Source: Wallemia ichthyophaga EXF-994 | Lineage: Eukaryota > Fungi > Basidiomycota | Length of the DNA stretch: 32,000 nucleotides | Assembly (NCBI RefSeq): GCF_000400465.1 | Contig: NW_008806280.1 | Span: forward strand, 150,001 to 182,000 | Direction of reading: 5' to 3' | Shown: positions 4,311 to 32,000 of the stretch, piece after piece | How the letters are laid out: the number at the start of each line of letters is the position of its first letter | How positions within the stretch are numbered: position 1 is the first letter of the stretch | Notes under the pieces: model-generated | The model's input: only the letters and a program-made list of their open reading frames with translations | Told to the model about the DNA's origin: nothing | Databases searched by the model: none | Made by a program: the position numbers and the translations under genes

Positions 4311-4432
4311 GTTAGGTGTTGAACAATGGCAATGACTTGATGAGAGTGATTGAAACATAGAATAACCAGGGAGTGAAAATCATGAAACTGTTGAGGTTCA
4401 TAGTCTGTAAGCTGCCTTGCGAGCTATACCAT

Positions 4433-7400
4433 CTACTCCGCCATTTCCTCTACACTTGGACAGCTACAGGTAAGGTTACGATCACCATATGCTATCACAC
4501 TATCAGTAAACTACCATCACGCCCATAAATTCACTCACCATCATCCACTCTCCCCACAGAAGGCCAGAACTTGTTATTGGCGAGGTAAGCGAGAGGATAA
4601 ACGGCCTTTTGGCGTGAGTATGGTCGTGTAGCAGCCCACTTGTCATCTGACCAAGCGAGAGATGAGAGAGTATGAGGGGCATTCTTGATAACGTTAAGCA
4701 CGCGATCCGCTTTTCCATTTGCCACCTCATCAGCCTCCCCCTTGATATGAATGAGTGCATCAATAAACCTATCGAGCGTCTCCTTGTTTTCTGACTCAGT
4801 AGGCTCTATTAGCATAGCAGATGTGATTGGCCAGGAACAGGTTGGTGGATGAACGCCAAAGTCCTGTGAAGAGGTGGAAAGGGTCAGTAAGTGTCATTAC
4901 ATCCATACGCATCACAAACTCACCTGCAACCGCTTGGCGAAATCCATCACCTTTAATCCACTTTCTTCGAAATTAGCCAAATCTAAAAGCAGCTCATGCG
5001 CCACAGCCCCTTTTGAGTTAACGAAACGGACATTGAAATGCCCTTCTAGCCTTTTCTTGATATAGTTGGCATTGAGGAGGGCAATTTTAGACGACTCAGT
5101 GAGGCCACTCCCGCCCAGCATTTTAATATACGCCCAGCTGATGGTGAGGATGCTAGCGCTGCCTTGCGCAGCAGCACTGACAGGTGTGAGTGACGAATCT
5201 GTACCGTGCGGCGAGAGAGGATGACCAGGTAAAAATGGTACGAGATGTTCAGCAACGCATATAGGTCCTACACCCGGTCCACCACCACCATGTGGAATCG
5301 AAAACGTTTTGTGCAAATTCAAGTGACAAACATCTCCACCACAGGTGTATGGGTTAGTCAAACCAACTTGTGCATTCAGATTGGCTCCATCGAGATAAAC
5401 TTGCCCTCCCTTATCGTGGACTAGCTTGCATGCCTCTTGCACACCTTCCTCGAATACTCCAAATGTTGATGGATAGGTGACCATGAAAGCTGCGAGATTC
5501 TCACTGTATTCTTCACACTTTCCGCGCAGGTCTTCCATATCTAACCGTCCATCCTTGAGCGTCTTGATTGGGACTACTTTCATCCCTGCCATCACCGCCG
5601 AGGCGGGATTTGTGCCGTGAGCTGAGAGAGGAATGAGACATATGTTTCGTTTTCCGCCATCCCCTTTGCTTTCATGATACGCTTTGATTACTGACAGGCC
5701 TGCGAATTCACCCTGCGCACCACTGTTTGGTTGCAGCGATGTCGCACTAAACCCTGTGATAGCAGCCAAGTCATCCTCCAATTCCCTTATCATCTTAGCA
5801 TACCCTTGAGCTTGGTCTATTGGCACGAACGGGTGAACACTCGACCACTCAGGCTGGGTGAATGGAATCATTGAGCTTGTTGAATTCAACTTCATAGTGC
5901 AGCTACCAAGTGGAATCATGTTGTGAACAAGCGAAAGATCCTTGCCCTGTAGGTAGTAGATATACCTCAAAAGCTCAGTCTCTGATTGATACCTGTTGAA
6001 AGTCTCGTGTTGGAGATAGGATGATTGTCTCTGAAGTTTTTCATCTGCAGCTACTTGCAGTGTAGGCAGAGTGTGACGGGTGAGGTTAAGATCGAGCGCA
6101 ATTTCCTCCAAAGCTTGCGGACGTGTGAGGTCTTTAGCAGCTTGGGATGCTTCTATGCCGCGGGCTGTTCTGGCCTGGGAGAAAACATCCAATAGCGTAA
6201 GTATGTCCTTCTCGGTGACACTCTCATCGAGCGTGATCCCGACTGTGTGGTCGTCCACGCGACGCAAGTTTATGCCATTCGCTATAGCGGCAGCGTGCGT
6301 CGACTCAGCTGATGCGACATGAACAGTGAGCGTATCGAAGTAACTGTCTCGATTCTTGACCGTGAATCCCTCTTTTTCGATACCCAGCTTAAGCACTTTT
6401 GTGAGAGCGTGAACTTTGGCTGCTATCTGACGCAAGCCCTGGGGACCATGATAAACAGCATACATAGCAGCCATGTTTGCAAGCAATGCCTGTGCTGTGC
6501 AGATGTTCGAAGTAGCTTTATCGCGTCTGATGTGCTGCTCTCTCGTTTGAAGAGCAAGTCTATAGGCTATTTTGCCGTCGGAATCTTTTGATACACCAAT
6601 CAACCTTCCTGGCATCCTACGCTTGAGGGCGTCTGAGCAGGCGAAGAATGCTGCATGAGGACCACCCTGGTTGGAAATGTTAGAAGATTTTCGACGACGG
6701 TAATGTAAACCTCACGTATCCCAATGGAACACCGAATCTAGCAGAGTTGCCAACGCAGATATCAGCACCAAACTCGCCTGGTGGCTTGAGCAGAGTGAGA
6801 GCCAAGAGATCAGTTGCGCAGACAGCAAGACCACTAAGGCTGTGAACTTGGCTGATTAGGTTGGAGTAGTCTTGGATGGCGCCGTCAATATTTGGCTGAA
6901 CACGGTGTCAGAAGAGCAATGAAAAAGAGTATCGACACTCACATACTGGAACAAAGCACCAACAAGGTCAGAACGTATATTGTCCTTCTGTAAAAGATCA
7001 TTAATGTCGCCGTGGACAACGTTGATACCAAGACCACGAGCGCGAGTGTGAAGAACAGCGAGAGTCTGAGGCAAGACACCAGAATCGACGATGAAAGTGC
7101 GCTTGCTACCTTTTGCGGTACCGAAAGCAATAACCATAGCCTCTGCAGCAGCAGTAGCCTCATCGAGCAAAGAAGCATTAGCGATGTCCATTCCGGTGAG
7201 AGAAGACACCATAGTCTGGTAATTAAGCAAGGACTCGAGTCTGCCCTGAGAAATTTCAGGCTGATAGGGCGTATAGCTGGTATACCAAGCAGGATTTTCA
7301 GTGATGTTGCGGAGAATGATTGGTGGAGTGACAGCGTTGTGATAGCCCATGCCTATGTACGATTTAAAGAGTTTGTTCTGGCTGCCGAGCTGCTTGGCGC

Positions 7401-17176: not shown

Positions 17177-18759
17177 ATGTCGAGCAGCAGCGGCAATAGC
17201 TCCATCGTCGCTGTACATTACCGAGTTGGCAAGAAAATAGGAGAAGGCAGCTTTGGTGTGATATTTGAGGGTGAGTCGATTGATTGGTTTAGTTGGTTGA
17301 TTCACTGACGTGGTTTCATAGGCACAAACCTCCTTAACTCACAGACTGTGGCTATTAAATTCGTGCGTTTATTAGGAATTTTGAAGCAACCGCTAATAAC
17401 CAATAGGAACCACGTAAATCAGATGCACCACAACTCCGCGATGAATACAGATCCTACAAAATACTCGCAAATTCACCGGGAATCCCTCAAGTCTACTACT
17501 TTGGTCAAGAAGGCTTGCACAATATCCTTGTCATCGACTTACTTGGCCCTTCGCTTGAAGATTTATTCGATATGTGTAGCAGGAAATTTAGCATAAAAAC
17601 GGTCGTAATGACAGCCAAGCAAATGATTTCTAGAGTTCAATCCATTCATGAGCGTAACCTCATCTATCGTGATATTAAACCTGATAATTTTCTCATTGGT
17701 CGTCCGAATACCAAGAATGGCTCCACTGTTCATGTTATTGACTTTGGTATGGCCAAGCAATACAGAGATCCAAAGACTAAGCAGCACATTCCTTATAGAG
17801 AGAGAAAATCCCTTTCTGGCACTGCTAGGTACATGTCCATCAATACTCACTTGGGTAGAGAACAATCTAGACGCGACGACTTGGAATCATTGGGTCATGT
17901 CTTCATGTATTTCCTTCGTGGTGGACTTCCTTGGCAAGGCTTGAAAGCTGCTACCAATAAGCAGAAGTATGAGAAGATTGGTGAAAAGAAGCAACTCACT
18001 CCCATCAAAGAGCTCTGTGAGGGCTACCCGGAGGAGTTTGGCATCTACCTTAACTATGTTAGGAAACTTGGATTCGAAGAAACCCCCGATTATGATTTCT
18101 TGAGAGATTTGTTCACTAAAGTGTTGAAGAACTCTGGTCAAGTTGAAGACGGTGTCTACGATTGGATGTTGATTAATAACGGAAAGGGTTGGGAAGCTGC
18201 TCAATCATCTGCACACCGTGATCATCATCACAGACATCGTGAGAGAGAAAGAGAGAGAGCAGACTATAGAAGATCTCAAGCCGCTGCTGCTGCTGCTGCT
18301 GCTGCAGGTGGAAATGGACAAAGTGGTAACACAGCAGGTGGCGTTTTACCACCATCTCCCGCTTTAGTCAGACATGGATCGAAACGTGGTCGCAATACAG
18401 GGAATTTGAACACGTCGTCACAGATGCTCACACCGGCATCACCCGCTAATGGTCAGCAACCACCGAATTCACGCAGACAGTCACAGCAAAACCAAATGAA
18501 TAATCAACATCCATACGCCTCCACTACAGGTGCTGTTATGTCTCCTTCAGATGCTGGTGACGGAAATGCAGGATCTCCTTCGCCTGGAAGAGAAGGTAAT
18601 CGCGGGAAAGGATATTTTAACAATCAACAAGAAAATCAAGGTATATCAAATCAAAATGTTGATCAAGCTGGTGGAATCAATCAAACTAACTCACAGGACA
18701 AGTCTAAGAAAGGTTCAAGTAATAAATTAATGGACATACTAACTTGCCGTTGTATATGA
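17177..18759 (+). CDS. Casein kinase I, Yck/Cki (CK1-gamma-like) type, about 495 aa
   Basis: [47 protein letters not shown] and [10 protein letters not shown] motifs. Introns 17271-17321 and 17363-17406. Disordered tail ends LTCRCI. Confidence 0.96.
18241..18303 (+). repeat. Coding microsatellites in the CK1 tail: (GA)n encoding Arg-Glu repeats and (GCT)7 within a poly-Ala9 tract
   Basis: GA repeat at 18241-18259; GCT x7 at 18283-18303. Confidence 0.85.
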
Positions 18760-18992: not shown

Positions 18993-19766
18993 CTATGAAG
19001 ATGGTTTTTCAAATTGCTCCCATTTTGATGCGGGGAATATGTGTTTGTTGTTGTGATACCAGGTGCGTTGTACAACCTTAGCGGGTGAGTCAGCGTCTGT
19101 AAAATTAAACAGCTCGCCTTGTTTTGAACGTGTTTGATTTACTTGAAAGTCGTAGAAAGAGTAATGCGGGGGTAAAATGAGGTCGTTCTTTATAAGCATA
19201 AGGTTATCCACATGATTTGACCTTAGTTGAGTGAAATTCTGTCTAGATTTGTCTAAAAATCGAGTGAAAGTGTCGCCTTTGTTGCAAGTAAGGGATGAAG
19301 GATGACTAGTACCATCAAAGAAAGCGAAATGAATTGTCAACTCCTCAGATTTAATCTGTTCCTGCTTTTCAAGGAACTCAATACGAAGAATTTCACGCTG
19401 AGAAGTCTCACTGATGTCTCTATCCCTATCAGGTAAGAAGGAAGTGTCTACCTGAGGATTTTTAGACAATTTCTTGATATTTAGATTGCCATGGCGTATA
19501 TCATCGCCATGATGAATATCATCACCATCCTCAACATCACCATCGGCGAAGGACAACTTGGATGAGGATTTTTTAGTTTTAGATTTCTTTTTGGGGCGTG
19601 CAGCATGTGAGGAAGTACCAGCAGCGTCTCTCGCAGCCTGCTCTTCAATTTGCTTACGTTTGAGTTTGAAGTCATCGAGGTGAACCAAACCTATGGTATT
19701 CTTCTTTAAGGATTCCTCAACGGATTCCTTATTTTCCGCCCTTTTTGTTGAAAATTCCTTTGACAT
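18993..19766 (-). CDS. XAP5: FAM50/XAP5 family nuclear protein, 257 aa
   Basis: Single ORF with TIGLVHLDDFK, LSFAD, KLSKNPQVDTSFLPDRDR, FAFFDGTSH, LMLIKNDLILP and KVVQRTWYHNNKHIFPASKW. Confidence 0.9.
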   Translation of the reverse strand: MSKEFSTKRAENKESVEESLKKNTIGLVHLDDFKLKRKQIEEQAARDAAGTSSHAARPKKKSKTKKSSSKLSFADGDVEDGDDIHHGDDIRHGNLNIKKLSKNPQVDTSFLPDRDRDISETSQREILRIEFLEKQEQIKSEELTIHFAFFDGTSHPSSLTCNKGDTFTRFLDKSRQNFTQLRSNHVDNLMLIKNDLILPPHYSFYDFQVNQTRSKQGELFNFTDADSPAKVVQRTWYHNNKHIFPASKWEQFEKPSS

Positions 19767-19828
19767 TTACGTGTGTTCTCTCTTCGCAGTGAATGCTCAA
19801 GCGCACAGCGAGGAATTTGTGGCATAAA

Positions 19829-22170
19829 ATGGAAACAACGAATACGTGGAATATACCAATGAAGGCGACTCAAGAGCCCGTGCTACACGTCTATAATTCA
19901 CTCAGTCGATCCAAAGTGGGTGGTGTGGTGTACAACCACTAAATACTCAAGTTACACAGGTCCCTTTCATTCCTACGCACGGTAGATCCGTCACTTGGTA
20001 TAACTGCGGTCCGACCGTTTACGATTCTTCCCATATGGGCCACGCTCGCAACTACCTCACTCAGGACATCATACGCAGAATCCTACGCGACTATTTCAGC
20101 TACGACGTTAAATTTGTCATGAACATTACAGACGTCGATGATAAGATCATCTTGAAAGCCAGGCACAGCTATTTGTTCAACAAGTACAAGCAAGACAATG
20201 GCGTGGCTAACGATACCGTCAAACGCGATTTAGTTGCTTCATTTGAGGCATTCGTTGAGAAAGTGAAACCATCATTTAGTTCTATACCACCAAATTCATC
20301 CTCCCCCCAAGAATACGCGGCGGCTGTTATCGATCACTCTCACTCTCTCCTTCCTTCTTGGCTTGAACACGAACCTAAGGCGGGAATGTACGTGCAAACT
20401 CTCAAGGACTCCCTCGAAGCACTCCAGACACTCTCACTCGACAAGGCTTACGATATTCTCTCTCCATACCTCGACAAGCACCACGGAGAGAGTGTAACCG
20501 ATCCTGCTATTTTCAGATCCTTAGCTGCTTACTGGGAGGCTGCTTTCTTCAAAGACATGGCCGCACTTAATGTCGAAAAACCTGATACACTCACCCGAGT
20601 GAGCGAGTATGTGCCTGAAATCATCCACTTTGTCGAGAAGATTATCAGTAATGGATACGCATATGCCGTTGAAGATGGGAGTGTGTATTTCGATACGAAA
20701 GCATTCGACCATTCTAAGTCGCGCAAAGGGTTTGAGCACGTGTACGCCAAATTACAGCCATGGTCGAAAGGTAGCAAGGAGTTGATCGACGAGGGTGAAG
20801 GGAGTCTAAGTAGTGGGGGAACGGGAAAGAAGGGCAATTCAGATTTCGCGCTATGGAAGGCGTCTAAACCGGGTGAGCCATCGTGGCAGTCTCCTTGGGG
20901 CGCAGGCAGACCAGGATGGCACATCGAGTGCAGTGTTATGGCGTCCGAAGTTCTCGGTCATAACATAGACATACATTCAGGCGGTGTAGATCTGAAATTT
21001 CCTCACCATGACAACGAAATTGCCCAGAGCGAGGCGTGTCATGACTGTCCAGCGTGGATTAACTACTTCCTTCACACAGGCCACCTTCACATCGAAGGGC
21101 AGAAGATGTCCAAATCTTTGAAAAACTTCATCACCATCGACGACGCTCTCGCTAGGTACTCACCCAGACAGCTGCGCCTAGCGTTTATGCTGCAGCTGTG
21201 GAACACGCCGATGGACTTCAAGGAGAGTGCGATGGCGGAAGTGCGCAACTACGAGAGCATGCTGAGCAACTACTTCAGCAATATCCGCGCACTGCTGCGC
21301 GACAGGCGCGATAGAGAGGTAGGAGAAACTGAGAGAGAGTTGGAGTGGGACGGCAGACACCACTACGATGCGCGCGAAAAGGAGCTGGATGGGAAGCTGA
21401 CGGCGGCGAAAGAAGGAGTGCGCGTAGCGCTTTGCGACAGCTTCAATACGCCTTCCGCACTGCAGGTCATGGGCAGTCTGGTGAGTGACGCTAATGTTTA
21501 CATGGCGCAACAGCGCGCGGCGAACACGGTCATGAATGTAGATGTACTAGAGAATATAGCCAAGTACGTCACGCGTATGCTGTCGATATATGGCGTCATA
21601 CCCACATCGCAGCTGCTCGAGATCGGCTGGGCTGATGCGCAGGGCGAGCAGAACAGGAGCAGAGAGGAGGACGTCATGCCTTACGTTAAGGCCCTGTCCT
21701 CTTTCAGAGACAGCGTCCGTCAGATCAGCATCGAAAATAAGGATGATGGCCTCGCGCAGATTCTTAGACTCTGCGATCGCATGCGCGATGAGGACTGCGT
21801 CGATCTCGGCATCGCACTTGATGACCAAAACAGCGGTAAGGCACTCGCTAAGCTGGTCAACCCCGATGAGCTACGCGCGGCAAGGTCCGAGAAAGAACGC
21901 CAAATAACCGCTAAAGCTGAGAGATCGAGGTTGGTAAAAGAACAGGCTGAGCTGAAGCGCGTCGAGAAACTCAAGAAGAGCAGCATCAACCCGGCGGAAA
22001 TGTTCAAGGGGCTGCAGGAGTATTCGAAGCTCGATCAAGATGGGATACCTACCCACGACAGCCACGGTGAAGAGTTATCTAAGAAACGCCGCAAGAATGT
22101 CATCAAAGAATACGAAATACAGGCTAAGGCGTATAGAGAATACTTAGACGCTGGTAGTCCTTCCGTCTGA
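19829..22170 (+). CDS. CARS1: Cytosolic cysteinyl-tRNA synthetase, about 765 aa
   Basis: Exon 1 19829-19915, intron 19916-19959. Motifs WYNCGPTVYDSSHMGHARNY, DFALWK, GRPGWHIECS, DIHSGGVDLKFPHHDNE and KMSKS. Confidence 0.97.
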
Positions 22171-22272
22171 AGATGAGTGAAGAAGTTTTAAGAAGATATT
22201 CATAATGCATGTATATTATAGTTGCTGTGACTCCTCTTATGCTCCGCGTGCTCTCAGTCCACCACCACCAAA

Positions 22273-22623
22273 ATGGCGTCACTGAGAAATAATTTAGGCG
22301 TGCTGAATAAAATATTACGGGTTGATAATATAACAGTGCAAGAACGGATATCACTACTGTCACTCAAAGTTGGTCTTGTGGGCGATAGAGAGAAGATGGA
22401 GATACATGTGGAATTATCACAGCTATACAGCTCACTCAATCAGCTAGAATTGGCTTATGTGGAATTAGATCAGGCAGGCGTGGCTGTACAAAACGACAAA
22501 GCGAAAGTAATACAGATACTTGGTATGAAAGTTGATATCGAGCATAGGAGACAGAGGTTGAACAGGGCACAGCAGCTGCTCAACCAGATCGAGAAGCTGG
22601 AGAAGCTGGAGAAGTTGGAGTAG
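22273..22623 (+). CDS. Orphan 116-aa helical protein, possibly TPR-like
   Basis: Good start context (CAAAATGG). The intact ORF fills the gap between CARS1 and the next gene and has an amphipathic helical pattern. No family recognised. Confidence 0.55.
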   Translation: MASLRNNLGVLNKILRVDNITVQERISLLSLKVGLVGDREKMEIHVELSQLYSSLNQLELAYVELDQAGVAVQNDKAKVIQILGMKVDIEHRRQRLNRAQQLLNQIEKLEKLEKLE

Positions 22624-22635
22624 CTCGAGTAGCTG
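22591..22635 (+). repeat. 9-bp tandem repeat, 5 degenerate units (GAGAAGCTG)
   Basis: gagaagctg gagaagctg gagaagttg gagtagctc gagtagctg; spans the stop codon of the orphan ORF. Confidence 0.85.
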
Positions 22636-22645
22636 TAAACTCCAA

Positions 22646-24023
22646 TCAAATGGCATTCCTAATCGATTCAGCGACCGGGGAGAGTGGTTGACTGGTAAAA
22701 TTTTGTTGGTAGGCTTGTTGATGGTGGTGTGGTTGGTGTTGTGGTTGATATTGTTGCTGGTGTTGTTGCTGGTGATTTTGCTGCTGCTGCCCACTCTGCC
22801 CACTCGTTACACTCGGATCAAGCGTAATTAACTCATCTTTAATCGCCTGTCTTGCAATCTCGTTGAGGTCTTTGGTCAGTGTCATGAGAATTTTCTTCAG
22901 TTTACCCTCAGCCTTCCAAATTAGATCGAGTGAGTGTATTGGGAGATCTGACTTGAGTGTAGATGTGCTGTTATTGCGTTTAATGCTCTGCGGATGAGTA
23001 TCTGAGAAAGACATGGACATTGACATGGACATGGGTGCTGTGAGGCTGTTGTGCTGAGATGTTTGCGCAGAAGCCTGACTTTGCAGTGATGCTGATGATG
23101 GCTGTGTTGATAGTTGGGGGAGTTGAGGTGGAGGCGATGAGGCTGTATTCGTTGGTGATAGACTGAATGTGTTTGCTGTGTTAGGACCATGACTATGACT
23201 ATTCACCGTCGATAATGGCGATAGTGGACTTGACATTGCAGGACTTGTTGAGTAGGGATTGCTGCTATTGTTCACCACATTCGACCCTAGTGTTGAAGAT
23301 ATTTTGCAATAGATCTGTACCAAGATATCACACAGTGAGTAAATGACTTCAAAGTAAGACAGCTGGAAGGGTATATTAGGGTTAGTGAGGTATGTAATAT
23401 CAGAGGTATCGCTATTTGCTGTTGGACGTTTAGAGTGCTTTGTCTTGAACAAATTTTTGATCTTTGGTTTATAATTGTCATCGTCTAGATTATCATATTC
23501 AGAGAGAGTAGCTGCGAGACTCTTGATAAAGTCAGCTGGCTGGTTGTTATCAAGGTGGTAGCTGAGTGAGAGGCCAAGAACGAGAAATTTGTGTGTTCTG
23601 TGGATGTATTTAAGAAATGTAACCTAATAAAAAGATAAACGCACCTCTTTGACATTTTGTAGTCGTCCAAAGATGGTTCTAGGTCTGATCTAGAGAGTAA
23701 TACCGTATTAAACCAGTGTAAACGGCTGTATAAGCTATTAAACCAAGAGCACTTCATCTAGCACACCAAACTTACCCCTCATACGCCATTCTCATCAGCT
23801 TAAACGACTTGATACGCTTAACCATCGTATCATTGAGCAAATCAATGCCATCTGCATCTGAGGAACTGATAGCGATATTCTCCACTGGATCGCTGTTCTG
23901 CCTGGAGCGAGAAGAAGATGCGGATGTGCCGAGTGTAGATAGCAAATTGGATGCAGAAGACTTTCTCCGGATACCTTCACGTCTGCTAATTGGAGTTGAG
24001 TCGTTGTGAAAGAGTGTTTCCAT
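22646..24023 (-). CDS. Conserved fungal protein of unknown function, about 426 aa
   Basis: Introns 23726-23775 and 23598-23644 join the frames into MRMAYEGRLHWFNTVLLSR...THKFLVLGLSL...PNIPFQLSYFEVIYSLCDILVQIY...KLKKILMTLTKDLNEIARQAIKDEL. From memory these blocks resemble uncharacterised fungal proteins; no search was run. Confidence 0.8.
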
Positions 24024-24138
24024 TATTTAGAGATTTTATGATTTTACTTGAAATTAAAAGAGTTGCTTGAAATTTACTAGAGTTGGTTTGAATTAATAGA
24101 GTTTAGCCGTTGGTGGTCTTGGTCGATGAGTAATTCCC

Positions 24139-25319
24139 ATGACGGAGTTTTCGAGTAAATGGAGTGAGCTATCGAATCAGTTGAAGGAGTTAGACGGTGT
24201 ATTTGGCTGTGAGTGGAGTTTTATGCTACAGACACAGCACCTCACCTCACTCACCCAGCACCTACAGCACACGCCAATTCACCGACGACAAGCTACCTAA
24301 ATGAATCTGAAATGGATATATTTGGCTCATTCCCTCTTTCATCCATCAACGATGATGATGATGCGCTTAAAGTGGTTAATTGCACTGAATGTGCGAGACC
24401 AGTCCAGAAGTCTGCGTTACAAGTACATTTGATTAACTGTGCTCAAATGAAACAAATATCGCAGCAAAACACAGCTATAAACACAACTACGAAGAGATCT
24501 AAAATTAAGAAGGAAGATACACCAACTCGGACACCTACACCTTCTGCAGAGAGCACACACAGCACAAACAACAGAAAGAGAAGACTGAGTGATGTCTCAC
24601 AGCAATCCACAACTTTGTCCGCATCCCCTCAAAAGAAGAGTCGCAAATTAGACGTCGATAAGCCGAAGAATAAGGCAGCCAACAACAAAGACAAAGAGAA
24701 GGACAAGGAGAAAGAGAAAGGCAAGAAGGACAAGGATGAGGGGCCAATAGACTTAGACAGTCAATGTGGCGTGATCAACGCCAAAGGTACGCCTTGTTCA
24801 CGTAGCTTGACTTGCAAAACCCACCCTATGGGCGCTAAAAGGGCGGTTGAGGGGCGTACTAAGCCATATGACGTGCTTACGTATGAGTTTGAACTAAAGC
24901 GTAAACCTGAATTGGCTGAGAAGCCATTACCCAAGGCTGTCACGCAGTTTGAGGCGGATAGGGCGGCGAATGGGAGGAAGAAAACTGGACAATCGGAGCA
25001 CACAGCGCAAACAACCACGTCCGCTCACGCTCCTATTACGCCCACAATCACACCTCGCTTACAACCACCTCACCCACCACCTATGCCTCCCAAACCAACA
25101 ATAGTGGAGAAGCCAGTTGGCGTTACATCGTGGGATGATTTCAGCAAATATGATGAACCGTTGCTGCCCGCTTCAGGAATTGAGCTCGAGTTGGAAGTCA
25201 CCAAGATACGCGCTGCCACGACTAGCCACCGCGCGCGTCCACTCGCAGCACCTGCTAATAGAATGGCGGGACTGGTGAAGAAAAGAGCGACACTCGGAAG
25301 ATGTCTGATGAAATGTTGA
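24139..25319 (+). CDS. SGF73: SAGA deubiquitination-module subunit Sgf73/ataxin-7, about 376 aa
   Basis: Exon 1 24139-24208, intron 24209-24258. N-terminal Zn finger CTEC...HLINC and SCA7 domain DLDSQCGVIN...PCSRSLTCKTHPMGAKRAVEGRTKPYD. Confidence 0.9.
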
Positions 25320-25378
25320 AATAGAAAATATTTAAAACAGTGTACTTTTACTTGTAATCTAACGTCATCTACCACCTA

Positions 25379-25822
25379 ATGCAGCAAAAGAGGCATAAGA
25401 ATGACGATGGAGAGGAATTGAGGCCGCAGAAGCGTAAAAGGGAGGGAATGCTAGAAAGATCGCTTTCTAATTTGCAGTTGGAGAATGTTGGAGAGAATGA
25501 GAACAAGGATATTGAAATGACAAAATCCGGGAGCTATGAGGCGGATAAGAATAGAATAGTAGTCTACGATATTGATGAATATCAAAGTGACAATGAGGGC
25601 GTGGGTGATGATAATCATGCTGATAATCAACCCAAATACAAGCTACCGAAGCTTTTATCCAATACTCACGATATTATGTACAAAAGCATGTGGCAGCAGA
25701 GAAAACAAGGGGAAGGAGAGAAGCAACTTGTTTTGTATAAGCCATTGCACATACCCACGCAAGGCACGCAAGAGACGCAAGGGACTGCGACTGATACAGA
25801 TGCAGTGGCCATGGAACAATGA
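25379..25822 (+). CDS. Small, mostly disordered hypothetical protein, 147 aa
   Basis: Intact ATG ORF with NLS-like RPQKRKRE, an RIVVYDIDEY block and a C-terminal QLVLYKPL motif. Confidence 0.7.
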   Translation: MQQKRHKNDDGEELRPQKRKREGMLERSLSNLQLENVGENENKDIEMTKSGSYEADKNRIVVYDIDEYQSDNEGVGDDNHADNQPKYKLPKLLSNTHDIMYKSMWQQRKQGEGEKQLVLYKPLHIPTQGTQETQGTATDTDAVAMEQ

Positions 25823-25862
25823 GTATCTGAGTATCTGAATATATTCAAATGCATCTATATAT

Positions 25863-26756
25863 TTACCTGCTCATATCAAAATTCCTAATATCACAAACTT
25901 TACCAAATGTGTCTAGCTCTTGACGGAGAATATCCGTGATTTGTTTACGTGTTTCAATTTCATCGCCTTGTCCATTTCTAAGACTATTTAGGAGAGGATC
26001 TACCGTGTACTGAATAGGATCGCCCACATCCACCGTAATATCAGCGTTGAATGACGGAATAGCCGTATAAGGTCTACCATCGACAAACACGTCATTGAAC
26101 CCGGTGAGATGTATAGGGAGGATGGTGGGTGTATGCTCTGTGAGCGTGAGTACTCTACCCACGCCCCACCTGAATGGCCGCAGCGGTGAGGGTGTTATGT
26201 GTGGATTGAAATTGGGTGGAGGAACGTTAATCCTGCCTTCGGGGAACATGGACACCTGGTGAAACTCAATCAAGATATGCAACAGAGGCAGTCTATCCAC
26301 CCACCCACTTGGCTTCATCGAGCAACTGGGCCGCATGAGACACGGCAGATTGATCCACACCACTCCCTCTATACGTTTCAAGCACCTGTCCAGCTTGGAA
26401 GAAGGTCCGGAAGAGAGCATTGGTGAATATTACATCGGACGCGCCTAAAGTCCACCGCCTCCATTTCGGTTTGACGAGTGTGGATAGTGGAAGTATAGCT
26501 GGCCATAGTGGATCTTCTCCGCTGTCAAGTAGTTATTAGAGGCAATTAGGAGCACACTTGGCACCCACACTGCTCTGTGATTCGTTATCGTCAATACACC
26601 GCGATCACTCGATAGCGCTGCGTTGAGCTTGTCTGCCCCTCGCACACGCAGCGATCTAGTGCCATAGCGGTAGAAGAGCTTGGCTAGGCTGCTCACTGTG
26701 AGCATTATTGGGAGTGTTAGTCTGCTGCTCGGTGGTTTTGTTGCGTATTTCATCAT
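25863..26756 (-). CDS. TAZ1: Tafazzin-like phospholipid transacylase, about 265 aa, with degenerate motifs
   Basis: Introns 26522-26568 and 26256-26304 give [58 protein letters not shown] and ILPIHLTGF. Confidence 0.88.
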
Positions 26757-26788
26757 TCTATACGACGTCTTCCTTGTTCAGGACAAGC

Positions 26789-27865
26789 ATGGCTACACAC
26801 ACGCAGACTGAAAATAGACAGCCTACGTCTATCATATTGCTGGGAATGGCTGGCAGTGGCAAATCCACCGTTCTCCAACGCCTCAACAGCTACCTTCACG
26901 CACAGAACGATGCACCATACGTAATAAACCTTGATCCAGCAGTGCGAGAACTTAACTACTCGGCGAATATCGATATAAGAGATACAGTAGACTACTCTAA
27001 AGTTATGAAGCAGTATAATTTGGGTCCCAATGGCGGTATCATCACGTCACTCAATCTATTCACAACAAAGTTTGATCAGGTGCTGGGATTGATAGAGAAG
27101 CGTAAAAACAGCGTCAACAACATTCTCATTGATACGCCTGGTCAGATTGAAATATTTACCTGGTCTGCATCCGGTGCGATAATCACAGACGCTATAGCTT
27201 CAGAGGTGCCGACGGTGATTGGGTTTGTTGTGGACACCCCACGCACAATGGCGCCAGCGACTTTCATGTCTAACATGCTTTACGCTTGTTCAATTCTTTA
27301 CAAAACTCGCCTTCCACTGCTTCTGATATTCAACAAGACAGATGTACAGGATTGCTCGTTTGCGAATGAGTGGATGACTGACTTTGAGTCATTCCAGGCT
27401 GCGTTGAGCAGTAGGAGCGCTACCTCCACCCACGCCTCCACCAACCAGAACGAAGAACCTAGCTATATGAACTCGCTGATGAACTCGATGAGCTTGGTGT
27501 TGGAAGAGTTTTACGCTAATATTCGATCTGTTGGCGTCAGCGCTATGACGGGAGATGGTATGCCTGAATTCTTTGACGCTGTGGACAAGTGCAGAGGTGA
27601 TTACTACAGCGACTATAAACCAGAACTCGACAGATTGCGCAAGGAGAGAGAGGAGAAGAGCGAGGCTAGCAAGCAGGATAGCATAGATAGGCTGATGAAA
27701 GATATGAAGACGGGTGGTGAGGAAGAGCAACCCATCGAATCTGATGCCAGTGAGGAAGAAGGCGAAACGTTAGATGCACAGGATATGAAAGAGAGAAGGG
27801 GTATGAATGCTACAGCTAACGACGTAGCTAATGATGATGGTACAAGCTGGCCTACAAACCGATAA
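26789..27865 (+). CDS. NPA3: GPN-loop GTPase 1 (Npa3/XAB1), 358 aa
   Basis: GMAGSGKS P-loop, INLDPAV, LGPNGGI loop, [21 protein letters not shown] and FNKTD. True start probably ATG 26789. Confidence 0.95.
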
Positions 27866-28292
27866 TTGAAATGCATTTGCTATTTATTCTCGATATCCCT
27901 CTCACGTCAGCTGCGATTAGCCTATTGATATTGTACGATTGCGTGGTGTAGATTGAGTGCGCAATATCCAACTTGTCGTTGTCGACAAGATATTGCAATA
28001 ATTGGGGCAATTTAACTATCTGCTCTAGCAACACGGATTGCTTCAAATTGGTGGTGTCCTCAACATTCCCAATCAGTGCTAGTCGATCGCGTAAAGAGCT
28101 GGTAATTGGACTGAGCTCCTCTAAAGACGTCTTCATCACGGTCATATTATCAGAGGACTGTATCAGCTCGTAGTGATGATCGAAAATGAGCTGCTGGCGG
28201 GAATTCTCGAGCTGACGAATTGATTTATTAAGGCTATTCGATAGGCTGATGAGATCTTTTAAATTTAATTCTGACTTGTCGTTCACGGACAT
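27852..28292 (-). CDS. VPS51: Short Vps51-like GARP subunit, about 146 aa
   Basis: [44 protein letters not shown] resembles the Vps51/Vps67 N-terminal coiled-coil (L..LVYxNYxxLI pattern). Start taken at ATG 28292. Confidence 0.7.
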
Positions 28293-28324
28293 TTGGAGGT
28301 TTCCTGTATCAAACAAGGACAACC

Positions 28325-28766
28325 ATGGTGTGTATTTACATTGAATATTCAGTGGATTCATTAAAATTCTTATTCTTATCAACAGCTCCCACTCACTCTA
28401 CTCAACGCTGCACAGAATAAGCCACTGCTGGTTGAGTTGAAATCAGGCGAAACTTTCAACGGCCATTTGATAGCCTGTGACAACTACATGAATCTCACAC
28501 TCAAGCAAGTCTTTCAAACCAGTCCAGATGGCGATGTTTTCTACAAAATTCCTGAGTGTTACATACGCGGTAATACCATCAAGTACATTAGAGTGGCCGA
28601 CGAGCTCCTTGATCAGATAAAGGCGACACAGGACAGGGACAGAGAGCAGTTCAAGAGTCAGAGAGGTTCCAACGACAGAAGCGATAGAGGTAGGGGTAGA
28701 GGCGGTAGAGGCGGTAGAGGCAGAGGCAGAGCTAGAGGTAGAGGATCACATAACAATAACCAGTAA
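28325..28766 (+). CDS. LSM4: U6 snRNA-associated Sm-like protein Lsm4, 127 aa
   Basis: ATG followed by intron 28328-28385, then [28 protein letters not shown]...DNYMNLTL...[13 protein letters not shown] and an RG-rich tail. Confidence 0.95.
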
Positions 28767-28791
28767 CAGCACTAACAAAGTCATTTATATT

Positions 28792-29628
28792 CTACCCTAC
28801 CATACTCTTCTTGCGCCCACGAAGCCTGACATCATGTAACTTGATATTCACCTTGTTCCACTCGGCATCACCTACTCTGCGTGCATAGCTGTTGAGCAGC
28901 GTTGTGTACTCTGCTTCAAACGCCGGGTGTGTGCTTCCAAACGCCCTCTCGAGAACATAGAGATCAACAGCCCTATCTTCTGCGCTGGTGTAGTGCGTGA
29001 TAGGTTTGAGGGATGACAATCCAAAGTCTATGATATACACAGCATTCGGATGGTGTTTAAGGATGAGGTTCGATGTGCTATTCATGTGCATTAGCTGGTT
29101 ACTTAATTGTTCAAACCACCCACGTTAAATCACCGTGTATAATCCCCGACAGATGCAATACAGCTATCTGTTCACCGACAAGCTGCATAAGCGTGTCTCT
29201 GTCAATACCTACACTCTTCATATCCAGTCTCATCCCGTCATCAGCTTTCACTTGGCCTTCGGCTTTACTCCCCAGCCACTCCCGCACACTGTATCCATCC
29301 AGCCACTCCATAGCCACCATTCCATCACGACTATCTGTGAACACCACTCGCGGCACCTGCACACCCAGCGATTCTGCTCTGTTCAGCGCCTTCACCTCCG
29401 ATTGTATCCTTTGCTTATTTAAACTTCTATCCAGTGTCGCATGTCGGTATTTCTTCGGGAAGCGCCACTTGAGTATCATTGAACGCTCCTGCGATTGGCT
29501 CAAATACACCCTCTGCCGAACTGCTTAGATTGTCGCTCTATTTATACACTCCAACTAACCGCCTCCGCTCCTTGCTTTATCAGCTGCGATTCGCCCCGAA
29601 GCTCCTCGCTCGTCCTCGTATTCGCCAT
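28792..29628 (-). CDS. BUD32: KEOPS complex kinase Bud32/PRPK, about 247 aa
   Basis: LIKQGAEA|RVY, ILKWRFPKKYRH, IHGDLT|TSNLIL, IDFGL, EDRAVDLYVLERAF and VRLRGRKKSMVG*. Introns 29513-29559 and 29078-29123. Confidence 0.95.
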
Positions 29629-31073
29629 CACCGTTTCTATCAAGGAGTATATTAGTCGAGAGTTATTCCTCACGCTGATAAACTACACGCGAATATACTC
29701 TTTATCTGTCTCAAATATCCTTGTGATAGTGTTCTGCAACCTTCTACACTCGCATGGCCAATTGTGGCATGACGCAGGGTATGTGTATCGATTATAGGGC
29801 AAGCCCTGAGTTACAAAAGCCATTGAAAACCATTGCCTCCTCAAAACATCTTTATGATTGCTTGGATCTTTAGATGTCCATCACATTACGATACTATTCC
29901 TTGAGATGCTAGGATTAATCTCAGCGACCGTTTTATAGGGTTTTGTCAGCCCAGCTGTTTTGTCGTGGCTTTAAACCTAAGCACAGCAAACGCTCCCAAA
30001 CTTGTGTGTTGCACAAATAATAAATCAACACTGATTCACAGTACTCACTACTATACTCTTTTTGAGGCCATGGTAAAGAAGCAAATGTGTTGAATGGAGC
30101 GTGTTTATTTGACTGGAAAATTTTCAAGTTTCACCATGACCGTTCCACGTGGTCCACATGTTTGTGTCACCAAACATACATACTATCTTCAGCTCTGCAG
30201 CTCTAACTAATTTTCAATTACTCTTTCAACCCCATTATTTTAAACTTTGAAATGCACCTTGTCTACCCAAACCCCCGATTTCACAGTTTTGATGACCCCC
30301 ACTTCTCTATAGCTAGTTCTCTTCTTCAAATTATAAAGTGAGGCGAAATCGCAATAACAGTTCCCTTGTGCCATGTTCGAGTCCTGTAGACGCCACGCAT
30401 GTAAACCGTTTGTCGCAGATATTGAGCCGAATAACTGATATTTTTAGGTATTTGTAGTATCCAAAATGCATAATGCTTTGGATTCATCTATTAAGCGCGT
30501 TAAATCCTCTGTATCTATCATACAGGTGCTTCAGAGTGATTTCGGACCATTGCTTCCGACCAGCGTGTAGGGCGCAAGTCGGAGCTCCAGGGATCTAACT
30601 CTGACAAAATCATACTCATCTAATCCAGAGCAACCAAGGAACCTCTTTTATTTGGAGATCGTCAAAAGTCGTAAATCACCATCTAAGATGGTGGATATTG
30701 AGCGTAGGGTTGAGATGAGGACTTACTTGAAATGCTGAAATTGTCATACTAATGATGGTCTTGCTAGACTGTTCAAATTGGCAATAAATGGTATCCTTGC
30801 GTTCACCTTCTCACTTTATTGGCTATTTGTAGGTTGAGCTGAGCATATTCAATGAAATGGATAGAGCTGCACTATCTATAAAATTCTAAAGAGCTGTAGC
30901 ACACATTCAAACCCGTCTGCTATCCTTTGAAATCGGTGATTTAAGTCGCAGATAAAGTATTTCCGCATCACAAAGAGGGCAGAGTTGTTGAAATGAGTTC
31001 ATACATTTGAAGATAACTCGTTAAAGCAAATAAACATGAGACATTAAAAAACTGGTTAGACAGTACATGTAAG

Positions 31074-32000
31074 TCACACATATCTTCTCCCTTCTTGCAG
31101 CTTGCTAATGATGGTGGGATGTTCATATTTCCAATATGATCCATCTGGGTAAGTATATTTTTCGATCGATTCCTGATGCATTTCGATGCTATTGTGGGAA
31201 TGTGAGACTAGCAATGGGAATCCAAAACAACCCACCTATATCCACAACTTTTGTCCAGAGGTGCATTATATCTGCCATGTGAATTGACGCTTACCGGATA
31301 CTTGAAGTGTTCGTGTAGATGGTCGACCCACTCGACAACGTTGCGATCGAATGTGGGTGCTATGGAAATGAAATCGATCATGGACAAGTGAACAACGTAT
31401 TCACACAACCCGACACCACCAGCATGAGGACATACTTGAGAGTATTGAGTGTTAGTGAAGTGCGAGATTGAGGCTGAAACGATTTTGCCTACCTGGTACA
31501 CCGAACTTGGCAGCCAACAGCATCACTGCTAGGCATTCATTAACTCCAGCGAGACGACATGCATCTATTTGGAGAACATCTATAGCTCCTGCTTGAAGAA
31601 GCTGCTTGAATAGAACCCTGTTTGCGCAGTGTTCTCCAGTAGCTACTCCGATTCCGATATCTTTCAACCCTTTGCGTATTCTAGCATGACCCAAGACATC
31701 ATCAGGCATTGTGGGTTCTTCAATGAACCATGGTTTACATTGCTCGAGTTTCTTGACGTACGCTATAGCCTCTTCGACATCCCAAACTTGGTTTGCATCA
31801 ATCATTAAGACGTTGCCTGTGAATCAACGTGAGCAGGATAGACCAATTGCTTCTCAACTCACCAGTGGGACCTGCATTCTTCCCTTCAATAGTCTTAGCG
31901 TGTACCCGCTTATCCTTGTTCTGATACTGAGGATCGTCGATGATATCTCTGATCACCTTGGCTCGAGCCAAGTCATCATCCACTGAAACGCCGACTTTAA
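31074..32000 (-). CDS. Enolase-superfamily acid-sugar dehydratase (ENOSF1/L-fuconate or L-galactonate dehydratase-like); 5' end beyond window
   Basis: [66 protein letters not shown] and [10 protein letters not shown]. Introns 31817-31862, 31435-31492 and 31189-31235. Stop TGA at 31076-31074. Confidence 0.93.

Follow-up and report, generated by a model that had tools for sequence, protein, structure and literature searches.

Results

The DNA analysed here, referred to as the window, is a stretch of 32,000 nt from the halophilic basidiomycete Wallemia ichthyophaga EXF-994 (scaffold KE007230.1:150001-182000), and all positions are counted from its first letter. Between positions 18993 and 29628 an ORF map, splice-aware gene models and direct reading of the junctions identify 11 distinct protein-coding genes within 10,636 nt, which we number G1 to G11. 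The gaps between successive CDSs are, in order, 62, 102, 22, 115, 59, 40, 32, -14, 32 and 25 nt, the positive ones adding up to 489 nt. Every one of these values agrees exactly with the initial annotation, which had described 11 genes in 10.6 kb with about 489 nt of intergenic DNA, and the tight 11-gene run is confirmed as real. The block consists of 91.3 % CDS, 4.1 % intron and 4.6 % spacer, and the spacers are AT-richer than the block as a whole (36 % versus 46 % GC). According to the splice models, nine introns of 44-58 nt with canonical GT..AG borders are present in six to seven of the 11 genes, in keeping with the earlier description of an intron-bearing eukaryote. The orientation of the genes along the block is - + + - + + - + - + -, so that the strand flips at eight of the ten junctions, giving four head-to-head, four tail-to-tail (-14 to 40 nt) and two same-strand (102 and 59 nt) arrangements.

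The first gene, G1 (18993-19766, minus strand), is a single exon coding for a 257 aa XAP5-domain protein (Pfam XAP5, E=9e-35); an identical protein is annotated in W. ichthyophaga, and three other Wallemia species conserve the sequence from residue 1 onwards. It diverges from G2 (19829-22170, plus strand), the cysteinyl-tRNA synthetase (CysRS) gene (Pfam tRNA-synt_1e, E=4e-110), for which a unique splice model with a 44 nt intron (19916-19959, plus strand) starts at the ATG at 19829 and yields 765 aa. Translation from a second, conserved ATG in the same frame at 19793 would lengthen the protein to 777 aa; the resulting basic N-terminal extension of 12 aa is in frame in four species, and the 777 aa model is annotated in one strain. 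The spacer between the two genes (19767-19828) is 62 nt long and shrinks to 26 nt if the ATG at 19793 is the start; it contains the motif CAGTG(A/T)ATGCT, which is conserved in four species and includes this upstream ATG.

On the same strand as CysRS follows G3 (22273-22623, plus strand), a single-exon gene for a protein of 116 aa with homologues confined to Wallemia, which shows 70-83 % amino-acid identity from residue 1 in three species and a coding pattern of substitutions. G4 (22646-24023, minus strand; introns 23726-23775 and 23598-23644) encodes a Ser/Gln-rich protein with no assigned function; its splice model matches the annotated 426 aa product and aligns over the full length in three species, and a Pfam search gave no match. 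G5 (24139-25319, plus strand) encodes an SCA7/Sgf73-type SAGA subunit of about 376 aa (Pfam SCA7, E=4e-28) with a single intron near 24209-24258, the acceptor of which is uncertain; the first exon is conserved, and three species share the C-terminus ...RCLMK together with the stop. The G4-G5 head-to-head spacer (24024-24138; 115 nt, 31 % GC) is enlarged in W. ichthyophaga by a 19 nt tandem repeat in 2.9 copies (24047-24103); its counterparts in the three further species measure 44-46 nt. G6 (25379-25822, plus strand), a second single-exon gene for a Wallemia-only protein (147 aa), aligns from Met1 in three species and also shows a coding pattern; its homologues, 143-156 aa long, occur as separate ORFs.

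G7 (25863-26756, minus strand; introns 26522-26568 and 26256-26304) is annotated as tafazzin/PF01553, and the splice model yields a tafazzin-family acyltransferase of 265 aa. An internal ATG at 26705 would give 248 aa and widen the gap to the next gene to 83 nt; however, the 17 aa N-terminal extension MKYxKPPxSxLTLPI is conserved as protein across four species, and therefore the spacer (26757-26788) stands at 32 nt from ATG to ATG. It measures 33 nt in W. mellicola, 33 nt in a third Wallemia species (L015) and 30 nt in W. hederae. On its other side lies G8 (26789-27865, plus strand), a single exon in W. ichthyophaga, which codes for the 358 aa GPN-loop GTPase 1, GPN1 (Npa3/XAB1; Pfam ATP_bind_1, E=1e-74), a protein with thousands of orthologues. 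Its stop codon TAA (27863-27865) lies inside G9 (27852-28292, minus strand; stop TAG 27852-27854), a single-exon gene for a 146 aa protein with the Vps51/GARP N-terminal domain (Pfam VPS51_Exo84_N, E=4e-11), which shows a coding pattern and has a W. mellicola counterpart annotated as a 147 aa gene. The two CDSs thus overlap tail-to-tail on opposite strands by 14 nt (27852-27865); the corresponding value is -11 nt in W. mellicola, +16 nt in L015 and +15 nt in W. hederae.

Vps51 is separated by 32 nt (28293-28324; 25, 45 and 30 nt in the other species) from G10 (28325-28766, plus strand), which was read directly from the sequence and encodes the 127 aa LSM4 (Pfam LSM). The LSM4 start, ACAAC(C/G)ATGGT, is conserved; exon 1 is the ATG alone, followed by the intron 28328-28385, and this ATG/GT arrangement is kept in four species. 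The last gene, G11 (28792-29628, minus strand; introns 29513-29559 and 29078-29123; Pfam RIO1/Kdo), encodes a Bud32/KEOPS kinase, and its unique splice model is identical to the annotated 247 aa BUD32. Apart from the GPN1/Vps51 junction, the convergent gaps are 22-40 nt in W. ichthyophaga and 4, 26 and 9 nt in W. mellicola. In three of the four convergent gaps the stop codon is immediately followed by an AT-rich hexamer, for example TATATA or AATATA. Over the first 200 nt after the stop, five genes of the block lack any hexamer resembling AATAAA or TATATA.

Public annotations list 8-9 models here as against the 11 genes found. The reference annotation, with eight models, fuses GPN1 with LSM4 and SCA7 with G6 and lacks Vps51, which is annotated in no NCBI W. 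ichthyophaga assembly; G3 is missing from most strain annotations. We rejected the SCA7-G6 fusion, as its 110 nt intron (25275 to 25384) deletes the conserved C-terminus and the donor is absent in W. mellicola, and the GPN1-LSM4 fusion, which joins two unrelated conserved proteins across an opposite-strand gene. The eight reference models and the frequent omission of G3 would fit the idea that the density is an artefact of annotation or ORF calling, with about eight real genes and with G3, G6 and G9 being spurious or exons of their neighbours. However, in three other species each of these genes is preserved from Met1 through to its stop and is far more conserved at codon positions 1 and 2 than at position 3, and G9 carries its Vps51 domain and has an annotation of its own in W. 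mellicola. The artefact explanation is already contradicted by these findings, and we consider it extremely improbable.

All 11 CDSs were recovered by tblastn in W. mellicola, W. hederae and L015, and throughout the block codon positions 1 and 2 are far more conserved between species than position 3. Among nine W. ichthyophaga sequences, polymorphism amounts to 0.8 % at first, 0.4 % at second and 2.3 % at third codon positions, and is equal in spacers and introns (1.8 % each). Mis-called gene ends would have undone the initial annotation, but the ends hold: all four species keep the start and stop positions. Gene order is identical and the spacers are tiny in the four species, between which four-fold degenerate sites are near saturation; W. 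mellicola, W. hederae and L015 all keep the head-to-head pairings, and the same-strand pairings CysRS-G3 and SCA7-G6 occur in all four. The gene models, their spacings and the conservation of both across the genus are the demonstrated part of the explanation that we propose below. Large insertions and synteny breaks are located outside the block or at its single loose junction, as would be expected if interleaved units were hard to separate; in L015, 969 nt of non-coding DNA precede G3. Outside the genus, the head-to-head pairing of GPN1 is absent from Mixia, Coprinopsis and Cryptococcus and is thus a genus-level feature only; as the block is not syntenic beyond Wallemia, its tight linkage is not ancient.

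At four-fold degenerate sites, conservation within the initial 20 codons (0.36) does not exceed that of gene interiors (0.37). Over the terminal 70 codons there is a weak excess for one pair of species (0.47 versus 0.37, roughly p=0.02) and none in the comparison with W. mellicola. With the excess absent or weak, there is no clear regulatory footprint embedded in the CDSs, in a comparison to which saturation leaves little power.

The W. ichthyophaga genome has been published as "unusually compact", with 9.6 Mb, 514 genes/Mb, 73.6 % CDS and introns of 61 nt on average at 2.41 per gene (Zajc et al., 2013, PMC3849046), and compaction in W. sebi/mellicola is credited there to Padamsee et al. (2012). 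From Table 1 of PMC3849046 we calculate a genome-wide mean inter-CDS spacer of approximately 373 nt, about eight times that of the block. Gaps within the block have a median of 36 and a mean of 47.5 nt, as compared with 278 and 372 nt for the 11 flanking gaps (Mann-Whitney p=0.0027), and five of 18 gaps outside the block are 115 nt or shorter. Assuming independence, a run of ten such gaps is expected approximately 0.01 times per genome, a rough guide only, given local heterogeneity. Since the genome is already known to be unusually compact, the block is an extreme local case in the dense tail of that property.

Discussion

In this study, we examined a block of short, mostly housekeeping and functionally unrelated genes: XAP5, CysRS, Sgf73, tafazzin, GPN1, Vps51, LSM4, Bud32 and three proteins of unassigned function share no common pathway. 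We consider it probable that this is an ordinary but extreme stretch in which each gene has its own RNA polymerase II transcription and the transcription units interpenetrate. The four head-to-head spacers, of 26-115 nt, would work as promoter regions in both directions, and the upstream promoter DNA of each gene would reach into the first codons of its partner, because the 26-33 nt between some of the ATGs cannot hold two Pol II initiation complexes. The four tail-to-tail pairs would end inside each other, producing mRNAs with complementary 3' ends; for GPN1 and Vps51 this follows from the 14 nt overlap of their CDSs, if both are expressed. At the two same-strand junctions the downstream promoter would overlap the 3' end of the upstream gene, possibly with some read-through. 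Where transcripts start and end in the block we infer from its geometry, on which grounds neighbouring transcripts almost certainly overlap. No RNA-derived contigs carrying genes of the block were found in the Logan collection, and no published UTR mapping for Wallemia was found in the literature. Three observations count against our reading: four-fold degenerate sites show no clear regulatory footprint, spacers vary within the species as much as introns do, and synteny of the block ends at the genus.

The yeasts Saccharomyces cerevisiae and Schizosaccharomyces pombe have bidirectional promoters and convergent, 3'-overlapping gene pairs that are independent Pol II units and need no special machinery, and their head-to-head units share one nucleosome-free region. 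Head-to-head spacers in yeast typically measure a few hundred nt, as against 26-115 nt between ATGs in the block. Defined by divergent start codons less than 1 kb apart, four bidirectional gene pairs are present here (26/62, 115, 32 and 32 nt).

The initial annotation had placed promoters and terminators within neighbouring CDSs, with overlapping UTRs, and the 14 nt CDS overlap and the ATGs 26-33 nt apart speak for this, although at the 5' ends short UTRs are a live alternative. According to that alternative, transcripts do not overlap, UTRs are a few to approximately 30 nt long and only promoter-bound proteins extend over the neighbouring CDSs. The 5' UTRs of intracellular-stage Encephalitozoon cuniculi are reportedly among the shortest known, overlapping transcripts being limited to spores; the tafazzin-GPN1 spacer is held at 30-33 nt in four species, as if a minimum leader length were maintained, and the AT-rich hexamers just after the stop in three of the four convergent gaps would fit short UTRs as well. 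For GPN1/Vps51, however, it is impossible, as the CDSs themselves overlap, and the 22-40 nt convergent gaps (4, 26 and 9 nt in W. mellicola) would need to accommodate two full 3' UTRs and their processing signals, with five of the 11 genes lacking a recognizable hexamer. We therefore regard uniformly short UTRs as unlikely.

Multi-gene transcripts had also been suggested, but the strand flips leave at most the two same-strand junctions eligible. CysRS-G3 and SCA7-G6 could be expressed largely through bicistronic or read-through transcripts, as in mushroom-forming basidiomycetes, where long reads from Agaricomycetes revealed polycistronic read-through affecting as many as 8 % of the genes transcribed (Gordon et al., 2015, PMC4503453). 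The tandem gaps are merely 102 and 59 nt, and in both cases a small Wallemia-only protein is encoded directly behind a larger gene in a pairing kept in four species. Like the block, the Agaricomycetes cases concern close neighbours on one strand in basidiomycetes, which may be transcribed together as well as singly. However, the co-transcribed Agaricomycetes genes are also transcribed independently and conservation of the pairs declines outside that class (PMC4503453), the explanation covers only two of the ten junctions, and in L015 G3 must manage with its own promoter because of the 969 nt of non-coding DNA in front of it. A predominantly bicistronic expression of these genes seems to us very unlikely.

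With its 91 % coding content, gaps in the range of tens of nt and a single pair of overlapping CDSs the block resembles a bacterial operon. It differs in that these CDSs meet tail-to-tail, not stop to start on one strand, and in that the genes contain spliceosomal introns; it is not an operon, because the strand alternates at eight of ten junctions, placing the genes on two strands rather than behind one promoter, and because the products are unrelated.

In microsporidian and nucleomorph genomes, transcripts start in upstream or end in downstream genes, according to the account of Williams et al. (2005) and Corradi et al. (2008) given in PMC3629993. The block shares with them spacers too short for a promoter plus 5' UTR or for two 3' UTRs (-14 to 115 nt here), but those genomes belong to parasites that are obligately intracellular or to remnants of endosymbionts, are compacted throughout and have few introns or none, whereas Wallemia is free-living, intron-rich and moderately compact on average, and transcript overlap in the block is deduced from spacing. 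Compaction of microsporidian degree together with intron scarcity is not seen genome-wide in W. ichthyophaga (mean spacer ~373 nt, 2.41 introns per gene). That Wallemia independently reached microsporidian-style interleaved transcription, with core promoters in neighbouring CDSs, head-to-head leaders of approximately 30 nt and pervasive antisense 3' overlaps, appears quite unlikely; if true, it would require tolerance of dsRNA or its dedicated avoidance, and gene order would be locked genus-wide.

Nothing points to the unusual gene-expression system that had been envisaged for the block. The genome had already been published as unusually compact, and a compact genome with interleaved units is a known phenomenon. 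The organism and the property are those described by Zajc et al. (2013), but PMC3849046 gives genome-wide averages, and spacer lengths, overlapping CDSs and UTR architecture are absent there. What the block adds is a view of the packing limit in a free-living, intron-containing fungus, with ATGs 26-33 nt apart stably across the genus and, as part of the same extreme, tail-to-tail overlapping CDSs, which we likewise regard as stable across the genus. Wallemia thus lends itself, as a non-parasitic model, to questions on the function of RNA polymerase II promoters and terminators within coding sequence. The density has also misled automatic annotation, leaving two fused models and one missing gene within 10.6 kb of the reference, and a similar bias is therefore likely elsewhere in the gene counts and orthology tables of Wallemia.

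Results

The window is KE007230.1:150001-182000 of the EXF-994 reference assembly GCA_000400465.1, and single-exon proteins encoded in the block are identical to W. ichthyophaga proteins. The block (18993-29628; 10,636 nt) was parsed with a six-frame ORF map, Pfam scans, a splice-aware GT..AG search and direct reading of the junctions. Its 11 coding sequences (CDSs), numbered G1 to G11, are in order XAP5 (G1; 18993-19766, minus strand), cysteinyl-tRNA synthetase (G2, CysRS; 19829-22170, plus, one 44-nt intron), a 116-aa protein (G3; 22273-22623, plus), a 426-aa Ser/Gln-rich protein (G4; 22646-24023, minus, two introns), SCA7/Sgf73 (G5; 24139-25319, plus, one intron), a 147-aa protein (G6; 25379-25822, plus), a tafazzin-family acyltransferase (G7; 25863-26756, minus, two introns), GPN1/Npa3 (G8; 26789-27865, plus), a Vps51 N-terminal-domain protein (G9; 27852-28292, minus), LSM4 (G10; 28325-28766, plus) and Bud32 (G11; 28792-29628, minus, two introns). 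CDSs make up 91.3 % of the block, introns 4.1 % and spacers 4.6 %. The stop codons of GPN1 (TAA, 27863-27865) and Vps51 (TAG on the minus strand, 27852-27854), read in the sequence, place the two genes in a true tail-to-tail CDS overlap of 14 nt. Judged by the Pfam assignments, the 11 products share no common pathway: they comprise the chromatin/clock factor XAP5, a tRNA synthetase, a SAGA subunit, a cardiolipin remodelling enzyme, the RNA polymerase II assembly GTPase GPN1, the GARP subunit Vps51, the Sm-like protein LSM4, the KEOPS kinase Bud32 and three proteins of unknown function. Two of these three, G3 and G6, have homologues in Wallemia only, and neither matches a Pfam family at the curated cut-off, with two weak TPR/ARM-type matches for G3 and none at all for G6.

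This parse recovered every one of the 11 CDSs claimed in the initial annotation, with identical gaps (62, 102, 22, 115, 59, 40, 32, -14, 32 and 25 nt), the positive values of which sum to 489 nt. Whether the gene ends had been mis-called was tested against the orthologous loci of W. mellicola (L004), W. hederae (L019) and a further Wallemia sp. assembled in Logan (L015); start methionines and stop codons align across the species, and the ends hold. All 11 proteins are present in the three other species, in unchanged order and orientation. Every block gene is far more conserved at codon positions 1 and 2 than at position 3, the identities to L015 at positions 1, 2 and 3 being 0.83, 0.91 and 0.67 for G3, 0.72, 0.74 and 0.46 for G6 and 0.81, 0.90 and 0.45 for Vps51; the third-position value of G3 compares with about 0.50 in the other ten genes. 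Among nine W. ichthyophaga sequences, polymorphism at the three positions is 0.8, 0.4 and 2.3 %. Two start codons required closer attention. The 17-residue N-terminal extension of tafazzin is conserved as a peptide in all four species, which rules out the shorter start and leaves the 32-nt spacer to GPN1 standing. CysRS has an upstream in-frame ATG at 19793, kept in the four Wallemia species, which adds a basic 12-residue extension (19793-19828; MLKRTARNLWHK in W. ichthyophaga and MLKCTLSKFTKK, MLNRSVRHLWNK and MLKSTIRQLWNK in the other three). If it is used, the spacer to XAP5 is 26 rather than 62 nt, so that the block is, if anything, denser than was originally stated. From its sequence, this arrangement probably lets a single gene supply a mitochondrial isoform and, alternatively, a cytosolic one.

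Eight models cover the block in the reference annotation, as against the 11 CDSs found here, and where public annotations of the block differ from the 11-gene parse they are wrong. One reference model (26789-28766; 471 aa) fuses GPN1 with LSM4 and so spans the opposite-strand Vps51 gene, which is annotated in none of the NCBI W. ichthyophaga assemblies; this gene (27852-28292) carries the Pfam Vps51 domain, and in W. mellicola it is annotated on its own. A second model (24139-25822; 507 aa) fuses SCA7 with G6. We reject this fusion: it needs a 110-nt intron (25275-25384) of about twice the local size, this intron would remove a C terminus that is conserved to the stop codon in the three other species, and its donor is absent in W. 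mellicola. The W. hederae annotation, too, contains a fusion, of Bud32 with the gene after it.

Spacing is given below in the order W. ichthyophaga, L015, W. hederae and W. mellicola. The head-to-head spacers measure 62, 74, 73 and 59 nt between XAP5 and the main ATG of CysRS (26, 38, 37 and 23 nt to its upstream ATG), 115, 46, 45 and 44 nt between G4 and SCA7, 32, 33, 30 and 33 nt between tafazzin and GPN1, and 32, 45, 30 and 25 nt between Vps51 and LSM4. The tail-to-tail spacers are 22, -17, 73 and 4 nt between G3 and G4, 40, 27, 37 and 26 nt between G6 and tafazzin, -14, 16, 15 and -11 nt between GPN1 and Vps51, and 25, 11, 46 and 9 nt between LSM4 and Bud32. At the two same-strand junctions, SCA7 is followed by G6 after 59, 76, 97 and 54 nt, and CysRS by G3 after 102, 969, 72 and 61 nt. 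Four-fold degenerate sites are near saturation across species (identities of 0.39 and 0.34) and the layout is kept, which argues that the arrangement is old within the genus and stable. It is not ancient beyond it: we looked for microsynteny around GPN1, and its neighbours are entirely different in Mixia, Coprinopsis and Cryptococcus. Insertions and rearrangements fall outside the block or in its single loose junction, where 969 nt of ORF-free, non-coding sequence separate CysRS from G3 in L015 (L015 positions 4376-5344), as compared with 61-102 nt in the other species. The synteny of W. mellicola stops right after Bud32, and three left-side W. ichthyophaga genes are missing there. The gene-free 1447-nt spacer that follows Bud32 (29629-31075) is specific to W. 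ichthyophaga; it contains no gene, tRNA or Rfam match and resembles none of the orthologous loci from the three other species, the L015 counterpart being only about 180 nt long. L015 itself (Logan SRR25399871 contig 3884) is nearer to W. ichthyophaga than W. hederae is, according to G3 and GPN1 identity, and seems to derive from a Wallemia species distinct from the named genomes compared.

The rest of the window has a gene density typical of the genome, with roughly ten genes in the first 19 kb (Mak21/CBF, KIN17, glycine dehydrogenase, a mitochondrial carrier, a Ras/Arf GTPase, an SH3 protein, an MFS transporter, a GH31 glycosidase, a 62-aa gene and casein kinase I). A 567-aa ORF at 4912-6615 had no match in one look-up, and no tRNA genes or Rfam matches were found across the whole window. 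In the W. ichthyophaga annotation, the spacers to one side of the block measure 233, 233, 318, 441, 680, 278 and 69 nt and those to the other side 1446, 332, 56 and 6 nt (median of both sides 278 nt), and their mean of 372 nt agrees with the genome-wide mean inter-CDS spacer of about 373 nt that we derived from published figures [(9.625-7.083-0.719) Mb/4884]. The in-block median is 36 nt (Mann-Whitney P=0.0027 against the W. ichthyophaga flanks and P=0.0007 with the W. mellicola flanks included). Spacers of 115 nt or less account for 5 of 18 outside the block, and, on the assumption of independence, the expected number of runs of ten is about 0.01 per genome. Tiny spacers (6, 55, 56, 57 and 69 nt) do exist outside the block, and for this reason, together with likely local heterogeneity, we treat the block as part of a dense tail rather than as a singular object.

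Discussion

The halophilic W. ichthyophaga belongs to the basidiomycete class Wallemiomycetes, and its genome has been described as 'unusually compact', with 4884 genes in 9.625 Mb (514 genes per Mb), a CDS share of 73.59 %, introns totalling 0.719 Mb with a mean length of 61 nt, and a repeat content of 1.67 % (PMC3849046). Compactness is thus already published for this genome, of which the block is a dense extreme, and the finding is therefore classed as already known in kind and in organism. The suggestion that the block represents an unusual gene-expression system is without evidence. Its spacing is that of compact genomes with overlapping transcription; however, the packing is not genome-wide and intron-poor as in that kind. 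It shows neither of the two defining features of an operon, and it does have those of conserved head-to-head gene pairs, within the genus Wallemia. Yeasts have interleaved transcription units in a milder form. For microsporidia and nucleomorphs the mechanism is documented (Williams et al., 2005; Corradi et al., 2008, both as cited in PMC3629993), whereas here we infer it. The RNA-seq analysis in the genome paper did not address UTRs or overlap (PMC3849046), and no transcript-end mapping for Wallemia is apparent in the literature.

What can be said about expression comes from the geometry. The strand changes at eight of the ten junctions, which excludes an operon-like unit. Of the interpretation first offered, the promoter and overlap argument is sound, but multi-gene transcripts can account for no more than a minor part. 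Given their overlapping reading frames, GPN1 and Vps51 must give mRNAs that are complementary along a minimum of 14 nt as well as through the 3' UTRs of both. Between the stop codons of the other convergent pairs lie 22-40 nt (4-26 nt in W. mellicola), leaving no room for two ordinary fungal 3' UTRs, so that, given what is generally known of 3'-end formation, antisense overlap at the 3' ends is very likely here too. The main rival is that UTRs are very short and non-overlapping, each mRNA fitting between its neighbours, for which there is a reported precedent in intracellular E. cuniculi (PMC3629993). This cannot apply to GPN1/Vps51 and is strained for the remaining convergent pairs; at the 5' ends it is a possible reading.

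Two RNA polymerase II initiation complexes do not fit between head-to-head ATGs 26-33 nt apart, and upstream promoter DNA would therefore consist of the neighbour's first codons. From general knowledge of this polymerase, either the leaders of the head-to-head genes are 30 nt or shorter, or start sites lie within the neighbour's CDS. LSM4 has a first exon consisting of the ATG alone, followed by a 58-nt intron (28325-28385), a layout of ATG followed directly by GT that is kept in the four species, and the rest of its 5' exon would have to be drawn from either the 32-nt spacer or the coding sequence of Vps51. At the tandem junctions, on the same general grounds, terminator and promoter would share 59-102 nt. 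Read-through transcripts have been seen by long reads in Agaricomycetes (PMC4503453), and by analogy such transcripts are possible at the two tandem junctions. In L015, 969 nt of non-coding DNA precede G3, which is thus evidently expressible alone. Taken as a whole, we consider it fairly likely that the block consists of independent yet interleaved RNA polymerase II units, forming the densest end of a genome known to be compact. Short constitutive genes in need of little regulatory DNA may have been packed together, and such packing, once made, would be hard to undo.

Traces of these arrangements were looked for in transcripts and in sequence constraint. Exact look-ups of spliced LSM4, tafazzin, Bud32, G4 and G5 returned only NCBI models or genomic Logan exon-sized ORFs. 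Four-fold identity showed no footprint of embedded signals at 5' ends (0.36 in the first 20 codons as against 0.37 in gene interiors), a comparison of low power near saturation. The last 70 codons gave a weak excess against L015 (0.47 as against 0.37, roughly P=0.02) and none against W. mellicola, both at low power. Within the species, spacers and introns are equally polymorphic, with 9 variable sites in 489 nt of spacer, too few for power.

Casein kinase I and G4 each have a long low-complexity tail, Gln/Asn/Gly/Ala-rich at 17515-18759 in the former and Ser/Gln/His-rich at 22646-23452 in the latter, and the GCT and 12-nt coding repeats reported by Tandem Repeats Finder fall within these tails. 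At GPN1 codons 246/247 (about 27524-27529), an intron of 46 nt in W. mellicola and 41 nt in L015 is precisely missing in W. ichthyophaga, where it looks to have been lost. The spacer between G4 and SCA7 is enlarged in W. ichthyophaga (115 nt as against 44-46 nt elsewhere) by 2.9 copies of the 19-nt unit CTTGAAATTAATAGAGTTG (24047-24103), within which strains differ by a 2-nt indel (24098-24099); as a sequence, this unit could be a repeated binding site.
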